Part shown: positions 42,570-48,500 of the stretch, piece after piece
How the letters are laid out: each line of letters starts with the position of its first letter
Numbering within the stretch: position 1 is the first letter of the stretch
Source of the DNA: Dimorphilus gyrociliatus
Lineage: Eukaryota > Animalia > Annelida
Assembly: GCA_904063045.1 (NCBI GenBank)
Contig: CAJFCJ010000013.1
Coordinates: 664,156 to 728,155 of the forward strand
Reading direction: 5' to 3'
DNA: 64,000 nt
Notes under the pieces: generated by a model
Databases searched by the model: none
Told to the model about the DNA's origin: nothing
What the model saw: only the letters and a program-made list of their open reading frames with translations
Translations under genes and position numbers: made by a program

Positions 42570-45500
42570 TTAGTTTGACTCCGGGGTTTCAGCTAAGGTA
42601 ACACAGTAAAATCAAAGTTAAAAAAGACATCAATCTTTACAAATATATTCAAATTCAACAAAATGGCAAAGATATTAGAAATATTCATAATTTTAAATAA
42701 ATAAGTATATACACATTCGCGTACTATATACTTATTTCCTACAATGACATATATAAATATATATATATAAGCATGTATATATATATATATATATATATAT
42801 ATATAAATATATATGTATTAGATATACAAGTATAATTATATATACATATTCGGATTATTATATATTAAAGACTATAAGTAAAGTGAATAACATTTTTTCT
42901 TAGTTACAAAAAACTCTATGCCAAAAAGAAAACATTTAAGTTCAGAAGGGCGCATTCAATATTAGTCCAATGTAAATGACCCACACAGCAATCATCCAGT
43001 AAAATTGAGTTAAAGGATTTTTACCATCTGTAAACTTCCTAGCTACAAATTTCAGCGTTTCATCCAAAATAACGACGGGCAACGAAATTTTTAATACCGC
43101 CATCCACTCTTCCAGATTTAGCGGAGTAATTTGGAAGACGGCCTAAAATTGTGGGTAAGGTATTTTCAAGAGTAAAGTGGGAAGGAAAAAACGGACAACG
43201 TTGTACTTACCGATAGAAAATCAACTTCTAAGATGAGAAAGTGTAATGACATCGAAAGAGCGATGGCACCAAGTAACCATTTATTTGACCAAGGAGGCAT
43301 AAGCGTTAGCGACTGGTTCTCGGAAATGCTGTAATCATTAGTAAGGGATGTTATAAATTTAATTTCAATTAAGCCATGTTATTACTAATTAAGTAGCAGA
43401 AACACCGTTTGGAAATAGTAATTTAAAATAATAATAATATAATAATATATAAAAGAAAGAACCAAAACAAAATTGCAAAATTGAAATTTCTAGGCATTCC
43501 TTTGGCATGCATAGTTGCGATTAGGAAAAATAAAAAGCCACTCAACCAGATGAGAAGGGCGAATTTTGCCAAAGCCCACACCTGATCGTAGAAGTCAACA
43601 GCTAACTTGCAACGAAATTATTATATAAATAATAAAAAAGATGATAAACGCTTTGTCTTAAAAAAAAATTAGGAAGTCAACAGCTTCGACGACTACTTTT
43701 CATCAGGTGTGGGATTGTGTAGAATATATTGGCAATGAAGTTAGCTGTTGACATTCCGCTACGAATTGCAGAGTGGGGGCCACAGCATAAATTGCATCCC
43801 GCTCACCTGTTCACCGCGTTCAACATTTCGATAATGACGAGAGTAGATAGGGCCATCGATGGCGGCTTGGGATTATCGAAAATGTCGCAATCGATGCCTT
43901 TAAATCTTTCGTCCTGCACTAAACATTGAGACTGGTGCGTCTAAAAAAGCCAAACACCAGCATTCAAGTAGTACAAAGCATTCAGAGAAGAAAATTAAAG
44001 GTAACAAAGAATAGACAAATTGAATCGACAAGAGAAAAAAAAGAAAAGAGTAGAGATTGAAAATTAAAAATGAAATAAAACGCGCGAATCCCACTTCCTC
44101 CAAAGCCCGACAACACAATAAAAGCAGACAAGCGATTTGTTCTTTCTTTCTCGAAAGGTTTTTTTTACCTGTTTATCGCGTTCAACATTTCAATCGTTAC
44201 TAGTACGGATAGAGCCATTGTCATTGGCTTTGGATGGTTGAAGATGCTACAATCGATACTCGGGAACATACGAGGTTCGGCCGGGCATTGCATATGATGA
44301 GTCTGAAAAAGTATTTAACAAAAAAATTTTGGGGGGAAAATTGATACTTTTGACTCCAGGCTTGCGGTAAAAATCAAATTCGTTTGATTGTTCTTCTAGA
44401 GTTCTTGTCTCGAAAAAATAAAAAAAGAGGGTAAACCGCGTCTAGGTTGCATACTAACCAATTGATAATAGTTGAGCTGAGGCCCCTTATCGTAAACAAC
44501 AAACCACCAAGCTGCGGCTCCAACTGTAGCGCATCCAACGTATCCTCCAATTGCCATATACCTGAAGAATAACCAACCGGAAATCAGTGGTTCTTGAGCA
44601 GATCTGGGAGGCTTCGTCATAATGTCTAAGTCTGGTGGGTTGAAGCCAAGTGCTGTAGCTGGTAAACCGTCAGTAACCAAGTTAACCCATAGAAGCTGAA
44701 CTGGAATCAAAGCTTCTGGCATGCCAAGAGCTGCTGTTAAGAAGATGCAAACAACCTCGCCAATGTTGGAGGAAATTAAGTATCTGATAAACTGTTTCAT
44801 GTTGTTATAAATAGCACGTCCTTCTTCGACAGCCGAAACGATAGATGTAAAGTTATCATCTGCTAAAACCATTTCTGATGCAGACTTTGCTACAGCAGTA
44901 CCAGATCCCATAGCAATACCGATTTCTGCTTTTTTGAGAGCTGGAGCATCGTTTACACCATCTCCTGTCATAGCCGAAACCTCTCCATCAGCTTGTAAAT
45001 ATTCAATAATTTTTTGTTTGTGAGCCGGCTCTACACGAGCAAATAGTCTAGCTTGTCTACAGGCCTTGGCCTGATCATCAATCGATAAGTCATCAAATTC
45101 TCTTCCTGTGAAAGCTCTGTTTTCAGTGGATTCGTTTTCTCCGAAGACACCGATACGGCGGCAAATAGCTTCAGCTGTGGCCTTGTTGTCACCTGTAATA
45201 ACGATAACGCGGATTCCAGCTCTACGGCATTGCTTGATAGCATCCATAACTTCGTAACGTGGAGGATCCAACATACCAACAACACCGACAAAGGTACAAT
45301 TTGTTTCGTATTTAATAAATTTTTTAGAATCTTCAAGATCCATATCTTCTTTCTTGACTGGTGAATCAATAGTAGCTAGGGCCAAACAACGTAAAGTATC
45401 TCTACCAGTTCCGTAATATTTAACATGCTTCATAATTTCTGCTTTGACAGCTGGTGTCATAGGCACTTTGGAAGTTCCAACGCGAACATGTGAACAACGG

Positions 45501-48500
45501 TCTAATACACCTTCGGGAGCACCTTTAACGAACATCTTAGGTCCGGTACCTAATTTAGTTTGTTTAGTGGGGACGGCATAGCATGACATACTCTTTCTAT
45601 CTCTAGAGAACTCTAGAGTGAAATCTTTCTTCCATTGATTTAAAATTGAATGATTGACAGCAGTACCCAATTCTTTCTTTTTCATTCCGGATTTCTCAAC
45701 ATTGGCTACATTCATTTTTTCAACGAGTACAGTCAGGGCAGTTTCAGTGGCTTCTCCTACTTTTTCATAAACGCCTTTGGCTTCGTTATAATCTACCGAT
45801 GAATCATTGCACATAGCGCAGATGGTTGATAATTCAATCAGGCCATCGAACTCGCTGCAACGAACTGGCTTTCCACCTTGGTACCTGGAGAGAAAGAGAG
45901 AATGATTGAGAGAAATTACATCAGTTCGAATACATAAATAAAACGTGTGCAGTTAATAAATACATAAGGAATTTCTTTTTTATTAAAATACCTCTCCGAG
46001 AAAAAAATGAGGCAACATTCCGGAAAGTTCCTCTTTTACTTCTTTTTGTATACTTAATATATGCAAACACAATATTATATTGAGTTAAATACTCTTTTAT
46101 ATACTGTATATATATATATAAACAGTATATTTATAGCATATATCAAGCATATAGAAGTATTTAGCAGGGTTTGGTTAAACAGTTTACACTCTTTGTAAGT
46201 TTTAACTTGAAAATTTTTTAAACAGCAGACTGTCAAAACACAACACTTACACTTCACCCTCAGGGGCGTAAGTTGAACCAGTTATTTCGAACTGGTTTGT
46301 ACTGATTGCGCCTTCGGAAATTTTGTCAAAGATGAACATCTGACGGAATATTCAATAAGAAAAGTAGAAAATAATGACAGAATTTAGAGTTGTTACAATT
46401 CAAGGTGTTAGTTTTAGAATTGAAAATAAAGCGAGAGTATTAGATTTTTCCACGCTATGATTAGGGTAAAAAAACTGATAAACTGAACCAAAAATTGGTG
46501 AGACGCTTCCATCGATGGAGCGAAAGAAAGTTACTACGACCAGATTTTTTATTGCTTTTTTTTTGAAACTTACACGACGCCAACTGGTTCGTATGTTGTT
46601 CCGTCTACTTCAAATTCGTCGAAGATCGGTTTCTCTTCCGATGAATTCTTGTTCAGTGTTAAAACCTGTGGATATCAAATGGGGTTTATACTACAAAGTG
46701 GGGGCAGCATGCAATCTTGACGATTATTAGCTAAATGGAAATTGTAAATGTAATTTCTGCCAAAAACCTGCACAGCATTACCAGGTCAAGGTAGCGTATG
46801 GAGGTATTTATCATACCGGGTGCTATATGTTATTAACTTACCCGACAGACGGACATTTGATTAGTTGTTAAGGTACCAGTTTTGTCAGAGCAGATAACAG
46901 AAGTACAACCGAGCGTTTCTACAGAAGGTAGACTTCTAACAATTGCGTTCTTCTTAGCCATTCTTCTTGTTCCTAAAGCTAAGCAGGTAGTGATAACGGC
47001 GGGAAGGCCTTCCGGGATAGCAGCTACAGCCAAAGCAACAGCTATCTTGAAGTAATAAATAGCTCCCTTCATCCATGATCCGCCGTGAGCGGGATCGTTG
47101 AAATGTCCAATATTTATTGCCCATACTGCAACGCATACAATTGAAATAACCTTAGATAATTGTTGTCCGAATTCGTCGAGTTTCTGTTGCAATGGTGTTT
47201 TCTCTGCCTCAGTTTCGGTCATAGAAGTTCGAATTTTGCCTGCAAAAACAATGTTTCCGTTTTTATTTTCCCCTCCTTTTTTTTAACCAACCACCCGCCA
47301 AAAAGAAAGCATAACGCAAACGCGAAAGCAAATTGCAGAAAGATAAAAAATCAGCCTACATTTGTACGAAGAACTTTATTCTTGGCTCAGCGGCTCTGTT
47401 TACCCAAGTGCGCCGACCGTACAGTCGTTTTTTTGCGCGGAGGTTTATTTCTATACGTTCTATACTAGAAATACTGTCCTAGTTTTACTAGATTCAACGC
47501 TAAGCAGGTGCGCTGCTCTCTAAAAAAAACGGGAGCAGGGTAGATTGAAAAACTTGTAACAGAAAAAAGCGAAAAGCTTAAATGACGTATGTAACTAATA
47601 TACTTAATTTAAAAAAAACTACTCGAACTCTACTTTAGGTACAAAGCGGTCAGATGCTGCATTTTTTTTCAGCAAATCACCCCGCTAAGTTGAACTTTTC
47701 CCTACTCTTGATAAGAATCAAGCAAATTTAGCCTTTTCCTTTTTCACAAAAATTAAGTTGCATAACTTAAAAAAAATTTTTCACCTATTTCTGTATTCAA
47801 TCCAGTACCAACTACAATGCCTCTCGCTTTTCCAGCGGCAATGTTGGTTCCCTGAAAAAATAAACACCATTAAGGAGAAGATTAGAAGTAGACGGTAGAA
47901 ATGACCTTTCGACGCAAAAAAATTGTTTTAGTTTTTATCGAAAGCTATGCGCCTTTTCTAACATTAAATCTTGGAATTAAATATTATTATATAAATAAAT
48001 TATGTAAGCTTCTTAAAAAAAGATTAAAGATAGTTACCGAGAATAGAACATTTTTCTTGTCTTGATTTACAGCTCTTGGATCGGGTATAGAATCGGTGTG
48101 CTTAAGTACAGAAACCGATTCTCCTGTGAGGATAGCCTGATCGACTCTTAGAGTTGTTGAGAAGATCTTTGTTAGCCGAATATCAGAAGGTACTTTATCT
48201 CCGACTGAGACATCAACTATATCTCCAGGTACCAATTCACGAGCTTTAATCCTTTGAACTCCTCGATGATTTTTTCGAATAACCTTAGCTATCTCAGGTT
48301 CATATTCTTTCAAAGCTTCAATGGCGCTCTCTGCATTCCTTTCCTGTAAAAATTGTTGATTTAGTAATTCCACTACATCGATTTGCGAGGGTTACACTTC
48401 ATCGCATGATATTCACCTGCCATACTCCTACCACAGCATTCGCAATAAGAATAAGCAATATAACAAATGGTTCAACAAAAGCTGTAACTTGTTCTTCTGA

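Follow-up and report, generated by a model that had tools for sequence, protein, structure and literature searches.

A single SERCA gene of the annelid Dimorphilus gyrociliatus with two tandem exon pairs predicted to be mutually exclusive and a predicted choice of C-terminus

The gene described here lies within a 64,000-nucleotide stretch of the genome of the meiobenthic annelid Dimorphilus gyrociliatus (contig CAJFCJ010000013.1, positions 664,156 to 728,155 of the forward strand), which is designated the window and whose numbering is used throughout. It encodes a type IIA, SERCA-type P-type ATPase, the calcium pump of the endoplasmic or sarcoplasmic reticulum. Analysis of the locus suggested that a single SERCA gene carries two clusters of mutually exclusive tandem exons, 7a/7b and 9a/9b, together with a choice of C-terminus in the style of SERCA2a and SERCA2b, a reading to which we assign a probability of roughly 0.8. 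One copy of exon 7 and one copy of exon 9 would be spliced into each transcript, and transcripts that held both copies or neither would be frameshifted and may be cleared by nonsense-mediated decay. The choice at exon 9 would exchange the outer part of the luminal loop between the seventh and eighth transmembrane helices (L7-8) and the half of the eighth helix (M8) that bears a ligand of calcium site I. An internal donor after ...KFTD would determine the tail: if it were left unused, read-through would yield a hydrophobic tail resembling an eleventh transmembrane segment (TM11), and if it were used, the transcript would be spliced to an exon 1.1 kb downstream that encodes a short, hydrophilic tail.

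The SERCA locus and its two exon pairs

The gene and the four alternative exons are as follows.
41854 to 49472, minus strand: SERCA gene, running from the start codon through the stop codon in the conserved short-tail exon; its exon peptides are those of CAD5120866.1
46574 to 46665, minus strand: exon 7a, the upstream, divergent copy; 92 nt, 30 codons plus 2 nt; used in the public gene model
46251 to 46339, minus strand: exon 7b, the canonical copy; 89 nt, 29 codons plus 2 nt; corresponds to SERCA1a residues 366-395 in a PDB alignment
44169 to 44302, minus strand: exon 9a (A type); 134 nt; aligns with SERCA1a residues 871-914; in the public model
43807 to 43940, minus strand: exon 9b (B type), the alternative cassette; 134 nt; aligns with SERCA1a residues 871-914; eight other genomes have a B-type orthologue in this position

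Both copies of exon 7 join the phase 0 end of exon 6 and share the donor GT/GTAAGT in phase 2, and the acceptor of 7a reads CACAG/G. The motif FE-x-x-G-x-TY-x-P-x-G is common to the two peptides. From the alignment, the choice at exon 7 would swap the first strands of the N domain, just after the phosphorylation site. When searched alone in the PDB, exon 7a gave no SERCA match, and it is therefore identified by its place in the gene, by alignment with 7b and through its orthologues.

The exon 9 segment spans the distal (outer) part of the luminal loop L7-8 together with the first half of M8. Exons 9a and 9b match in phase and are 59% identical across 44 residues. Both retain the two cysteines of the loop and the glutamate (in IEM) that is equivalent to E908, a site-I calcium ligand, so both versions should be working pumps that are differently tuned.

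Two duplicated-exon cassettes had been proposed by the initial annotation at exactly these positions, and intact AG/GT splice sites on all four exons and matching phases within each pair confirmed them. The exon lengths (92/89 and 134/134 nt) each leave a remainder of 2 when divided by 3, so that transcripts with both copies or neither are frameshifted. An in-script frame check of the four such cases placed a premature stop within 7-18 codons in each of them, and under this rule only one-of-two splicing gives a pump. Relatives agreed with the rule: their cDNA-length contigs and RefSeq isoforms hold either an A or a B exon 9, and either a 7a-type or a 7b-type exon. The exceptions were protein models from Echinococcus (P0201) and Batillaria (P0155) that read parts of both exon 9 copies, evidently mis-annotations. 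For D. gyrociliatus there is one public model, which combines 7a, 9a and the long tail.

The assignment of the gene to the SERCA family was supported by several searches. All exon peptides match DgyrCDS9416 / CAD5120866.1 (1021 amino acids, D. gyrociliatus) at 100% identity, and the translation contains the DKTGT, TGES and PEGLP (IPEGLPAV) motifs as well as the M8 glutamate. Exon 8 alone, compared with NCBIfam, had the SERCA-type family TIGR01116 as its top family (562 bits, against 279 bits for the PMR1 type); the score lies under the whole-protein cut-off of TIGR01116 because the query was one exon only. Pieces of the gene returned SERCA1 and SERCA2 structures of rabbit and human in PDB searches, and identity with annelid, mollusc and arthropod SERCAs was 74-87%.

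When the entire 78-Mb assembly was searched in six frames, no second SERCA was found, the next-best loci being 41% identical, and the earlier proposal of a single SERCA gene is thus borne out by one SERCA-type locus. The other P-type II ATPase loci in the assembly comprised one SPCA, PMCA-type loci and four Na/K-ATPase alpha loci. The Na/K-ATPase alpha loci (among L003, L004, L006, L007 and L008) have frames uninterrupted over 840-1020 codons and are therefore intron-poor, in contrast to SERCA. A PMCA-like frame on a small contig (C319) may be foreign to the worm.

A scan of the exons of the D. gyrociliatus SERCA gene found no duplicated exons besides 7 and 9. The constitutive exons referred to below are these.
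46842 to 47240 (start approximate), minus strand: exon 6; M3-M4 and the phosphorylation site; ends ...TNQMSVCR in phase 0
44459 to 45884, minus strand: exon 8; N and P domains through M7
43211 to 43328, minus strand: exon 10; end of M8 to M9
43025 to 43142, minus strand: exon 11, common part; M10 ... KFVARKFTD; ends at the internal donor G/GTAAAA

C-terminal tails and isoform number

Three stretches were considered as C-terminal tails.
42945 to 43024, minus strand: read-through extension, the long tail; 27 hydrophobic residues; stop at 42947-42945; in the public model
41854 to 41888, minus strand: conserved short-tail exon; AGIAEDPMKEK followed by a stop; CAG acceptor, compatible phase; found by motif scan
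42570 to 42592, minus strand: short-tail candidate of the initial annotation; AETPESN followed by a stop; AG acceptor, correct phase; unsupported

The Gly-Lys codons that follow ...KFTD form the internal donor G/GTAAAA, and the same TD/GK junction is present in Capitella, Owenia, Lingula, Littorina and Tubulanus. Capitella, a tardigrade, insects and molluscs have long tails similar to that of Dimorphilus. The exon at 41888-41854 is the counterpart of the annelid short tails VAVAxDPMxxK; it lies 1.1 kb downstream of the internal donor, 680 nt past the span covered by the initial annotation, and an AATAAA signal follows 320 nt downstream of it. The layout is matched in Capitella and Owenia, where the short-tail exon lies 1.7-6 kb downstream. 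The elements of a SERCA2a/2b-type alternative C-terminus are thus all present, namely an internal donor, a long tail that is hydrophobic and a tail exon that is short and hydrophilic, and the locus is predicted to use them as such. Of the two C-tails proposed earlier, the long tail stood, being part of the public model, and the short-tail exon at 42592-42570 gave way, for want of a homologue, to the conserved exon at 41888-41854. A (TA)n microsatellite occupies 42740-42830, in the stretch that separates the stop of the long tail from the short-tail exons.

With one gene, two either/or pairs enforced by frame and alternative C-termini, 2x2x2 products are possible. The combinatorial system put forward by the initial annotation is therefore possible from the anatomy of the locus, with eight products as a predicted upper limit only, or twelve if the tail at 42592-42570 were also used. 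Such isoforms can already be seen among the RefSeq predictions for molluscs, a nemertean and a brachiopod.

A tighter arrangement, in which the choices are coupled and only two or three isoforms are made (for example 7a+9A+long and 7b+9B+short), is a serious contender, to which we give somewhat less than even odds. In annelid-like sequences the 7a type was seen six times, each time with an A-type exon 9 and in three cases with the long tail, and every B-type or B/hybrid sequence whose exon 7 could be classified is 7b-type with a short tail. This sample mixes species and includes gene models, and it is a lead only. The combinations 7b+A+long, 7b+A+short and 7a+A+short also occur in it, and exon 9 and tail are combined freely both in Littorina, with four isoforms (A+long, A+short, B+short1 and B+short2), and in one JGI species, with two exon 9 variants and two tails; short-read assemblies, moreover, are unable to phase choices that lie far apart. 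Whichever holds, the coupling first suggested, of the divergent N-domain exon with the divergent M8 exon and the short tail, finds no support among the relatives, whose sequences point to the opposite for the N-domain exon (7a with A, and B with 7b and a short tail).

The candidate at 42592-42570 could be spliced, and as a genuine third tail it would bring the number of products up to twelve. A pyrimidine tract accompanies its acceptor, the phase is right, and ATTAAA signals follow 240-380 nt further downstream; three tails also exist in some molluscs, and the Aplysia tail opens with AETVET. Beyond this weak likeness to Aplysia no similar tail was found in relatives, and the candidate is one of dozens of equally good combinations of an AG with a short open reading frame in the same 7 kb. 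A tail-exon scan that required a strong pyrimidine tract returned only 42592-42570, and it was the motif scan that found the conserved exon. We consider a third tail unlikely, and a choice between the long tail and the conserved short-tail exon is the reading retained here.

Conservation, age and splicing control

Two Logan contigs (L009 and L010) represent a sister species, with 95% amino-acid identity in exon 8 and alignable introns. The contigs end at ...KFTD, and a word-based protein search for the downstream contig of this species returned other annelids and no information on the tail. All selection figures were measured against L010. Each of the four alternative exons is open in the sister species, with intact splice sites. 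Exon 9a is 96.3% identical in nucleotides, with a synonymous divergence (dS) of 0.17 and a ratio of nonsynonymous to synonymous divergence (dN/dS) of 0.06, and exon 9b is 97.8% identical, with a dS of 0.12 and no amino-acid change. The corresponding figures are 93% and a dN/dS of 0.24 for exon 7b, 93% and a dN/dS of 0.009 for constitutive exon 6, and 87% and a dS of 0.80 for exon 8; introns are 72-89% identical (about 80%), most with indels. The dS of 0.12-0.17 in 9a and 9b is well under the 0.32-0.80 of the constitutive exons, and such lowered synonymous divergence typically marks alternative exons that are regulated. Together, the substitution patterns indicated purifying selection on all four alternative exons.

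Constraint appeared moderate for exon 7a, which is 71% identical to its counterpart with a dN/dS of 0.19 and in which synonymous changes are significantly over-represented (p = 0.008). The exon has kept its length, frame and splice sites, and it has neither an indel nor a stop. Replacements fall mainly in a surface loop that is variable among all SERCAs, and FE-x-x-G-x-TYEP is retained. We read 7a as a probably fast-evolving yet coding exon. The public model used 7a although protein homology would favour 7b, which would likewise point to a real coding exon. The intron between exons 6 and 7a (46666-46841) is 89% conserved, above exon 7a itself, which suggests that it may hold splicing signals for the exon 7 cassette.

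It is improbable that 7a is instead a decaying or unused duplicate, its place in the public model an artefact of the predictor and isoforms made by the exon 9 pair and the tails only: its low identity to the sister exon, the empty PDB search, a very long branch in the exon 7 tree and the share of neutral simulations that stay open (given below) would fit decay, whereas the absence of indels from its 92 nt (the 7a-7b intron has 33 gap columns, the upstream intron only 2), the kept splice sites, the dN/dS with its p value, the concentration of changes in the variable loop around a preserved motif, the upstream copies in Capitella and Owenia, the 7a-type cDNA-length contigs of relatives and the adoption of 7a by an evidence-weighted model for which Capitella and Helobdella protein homology would have favoured 7b all argue against it.

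The genomic SERCA loci of relatives were scanned exon by exon. A tandem of A-type then B-type exon 9 was found in seven further genomes (Capitella, Owenia, an annelid from ENA, Lingula, Littorina, Tubulanus and Echinococcus), and the pair thus spans five phyla, namely annelids, molluscs, brachiopods, nemerteans and flatworms, always in the order A then B. The cluster is expanded to four copies in Owenia (L012, 64669-75734; three A and one B) and to six in the annelid ENA metagenome contig (L013, 1223-7922; five A and one B), and in both the B-type copy is last. In the tardigrade exon 9 is single. The B-type exons of the five phyla cluster together and not with the A exon of their own species (UFboot 90 / SH-aLRT 84), and they have in common THQ[SA]QCL[AV]Q... 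and, two positions before the glutamate, a hydrophobic residue instead of threonine. From this pattern, the exon 9 pair appears to predate the split of annelids, molluscs, brachiopods, nemerteans and flatworms.

Exon 7 is also duplicated in Capitella and Owenia, where, as in Dimorphilus, the upstream copy reads G-T-T-Y and the downstream copy G-S-T-Y, and a 7a-type exon is used in the cDNA-length contigs P0126 and P0130. Lingula, Littorina, Tubulanus, Echinococcus and the tardigrade each have one copy of exon 7, so that among the loci examined the exon 7 pair occurs in annelids only. The initial annotation had suggested internal exon duplication as a possible route to diversity in this animal; a route of its own making does not agree with an exon 9 pair in five spiralian phyla and an exon 7 pair in other annelids.

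Further tandem exon duplicates were observed in other spiralian SERCAs and not in Dimorphilus. They affect the A-domain/M3 linker, an N-domain segment, the M4 PEGLP exon and the M7 exon, at 12361/12774 and 15511/15801 in Capitella (L011), 57482/57895/58183 and 62740/63816 in Owenia (L012), and 24951/25544 and 33178/34015 in Lingula (L015). Since other annelids and Lingula bear these additional clusters, Dimorphilus would keep a trimmed version of an inherited system.

One further conserved element lies in the intron that follows exon 9b, immediately next to the exon.
43540 to 43806, minus strand: conserved intronic block, 267 nt; a predicted hairpin pairs the 9b 5' splice site

The block is 83-100% identical in the sister species, compared with 0-67% for the rest of the intron. 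It contains a perfect 15-nt inverted repeat (43594-43608 / 43738-43752) and is predicted to fold (z-score -3.2) into a long hairpin that base-pairs the 9b donor. Among the three intron blocks around 9a/9b, complementarity of the docking-site and selector kind was no better than in shuffled sequences (z -1.0, +0.9 and -0.5). The copies in Dimorphilus are 228-234 nt apart, which makes steric exclusion unlikely; in Echinococcus multilocularis (L018, 10073-10395) only 59 nt separate the A and B exons, a distance short enough to permit it. The conserved intron blocks around the alternative exons probably hold regulatory signals, notably the hairpin over the 9b donor.

Several observations weigh against the model of two mutually exclusive pairs and a choice of tails in one gene, or against parts of it. 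Exon 7a (71%) has diverged beyond its flanking introns (77-89%), and 28% of simulated neutral descendants of 7a also stay open, which makes the argument from the reading frame weak when taken alone. The use of exons 7b and 9b and of the short tails in D. gyrociliatus is a prediction, and the 7a/9a/long choice of the public model could partly reflect the gene predictor. The exon 9 tree is based on 44 columns, and the exon 7 tree, with 29, cannot separate one annelid duplication from several. The hairpin is without covariation support because its arms are identical in the sole relative available. That the isoforms differ in function, and that nonsense-mediated decay plays a part, are inferences.

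Relation to known systems and significance

Alternative splicing of the C-terminus has been described for invertebrate SERCAs (PMC3527596, PMC6987452), and in the literature searched no internal mutually exclusive SERCA exons were described, only C-terminal splicing of invertebrate SERCA. In vertebrate SERCA2a/2b, Artemia, C. elegans and Pinctada fucata, which has three isoforms, an internal donor in the last common exon separates a short hydrophilic from a longer hydrophobic tail, and the same layout is found in Dimorphilus, Capitella and Owenia. Dimorphilus differs from these systems in that its long tail would come from unspliced read-through and its short tail from splicing, and in the addition of two internal either/or clusters.

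The two clusters resemble mutually exclusive tandem exons of other genes (PMC9013439, PMC9741552, PMC5740500) in being adjacent homologues of equal or nearly equal length and the same phase, with a frame that is broken by both or neither. As in those systems, they are ancient and conserved, synonymous sites included, and their flanking introns are conserved. In contrast to exclusive exons controlled by docking and selector sequences (the Dscam type), no such pairing was found around 9a and 9b, and a predicted local hairpin follows 9b instead.

In SERCA2b the extra C-terminal segment approaches the luminal TM7-TM8 loop (PMC7423393), and the distal half of this loop is the part swapped by exon 9, so an interplay between tail and cassette is possible. 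The invertebrate long tail differs from that of SERCA2b in being shorter and in having no recognisable MFWS-type extension, and relatives pair it with both A and B exons. The vertebrate genes ATP2A1-3 provide differently tuned pumps for different tissues, as the Dimorphilus isoforms may do, and the Dimorphilus cassettes alter parts that also differ among those paralogues; in vertebrates this diversity comes from whole-gene duplication, in Dimorphilus it would come from exon duplication, and an equivalence between particular isoforms is conjecture.

The retention of both cassettes in a genome that has shrunk to 78 Mb argues that they are needed. For public spiralian gene sets, the comparison flags annotation errors, in which models read both copies, and missing isoforms. 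SERCA is among the best-understood membrane pumps, and the natural 9A/9B pairs offer ready variants with which to probe how M8 and the luminal loop set calcium affinity and turnover. More tentatively, and with appreciable doubt, we propose that the L7-8/M8 cassette may be a switch more than 500 million years old, present in all spiralian phyla examined, that would retune the pump at its calcium site and on its luminal face. In annelids it would act together with the N-domain cassette and the tail, tissue by tissue and from one gene, to do the job of three vertebrate paralogues, with the hairpin over the 9b donor as the possible switch.

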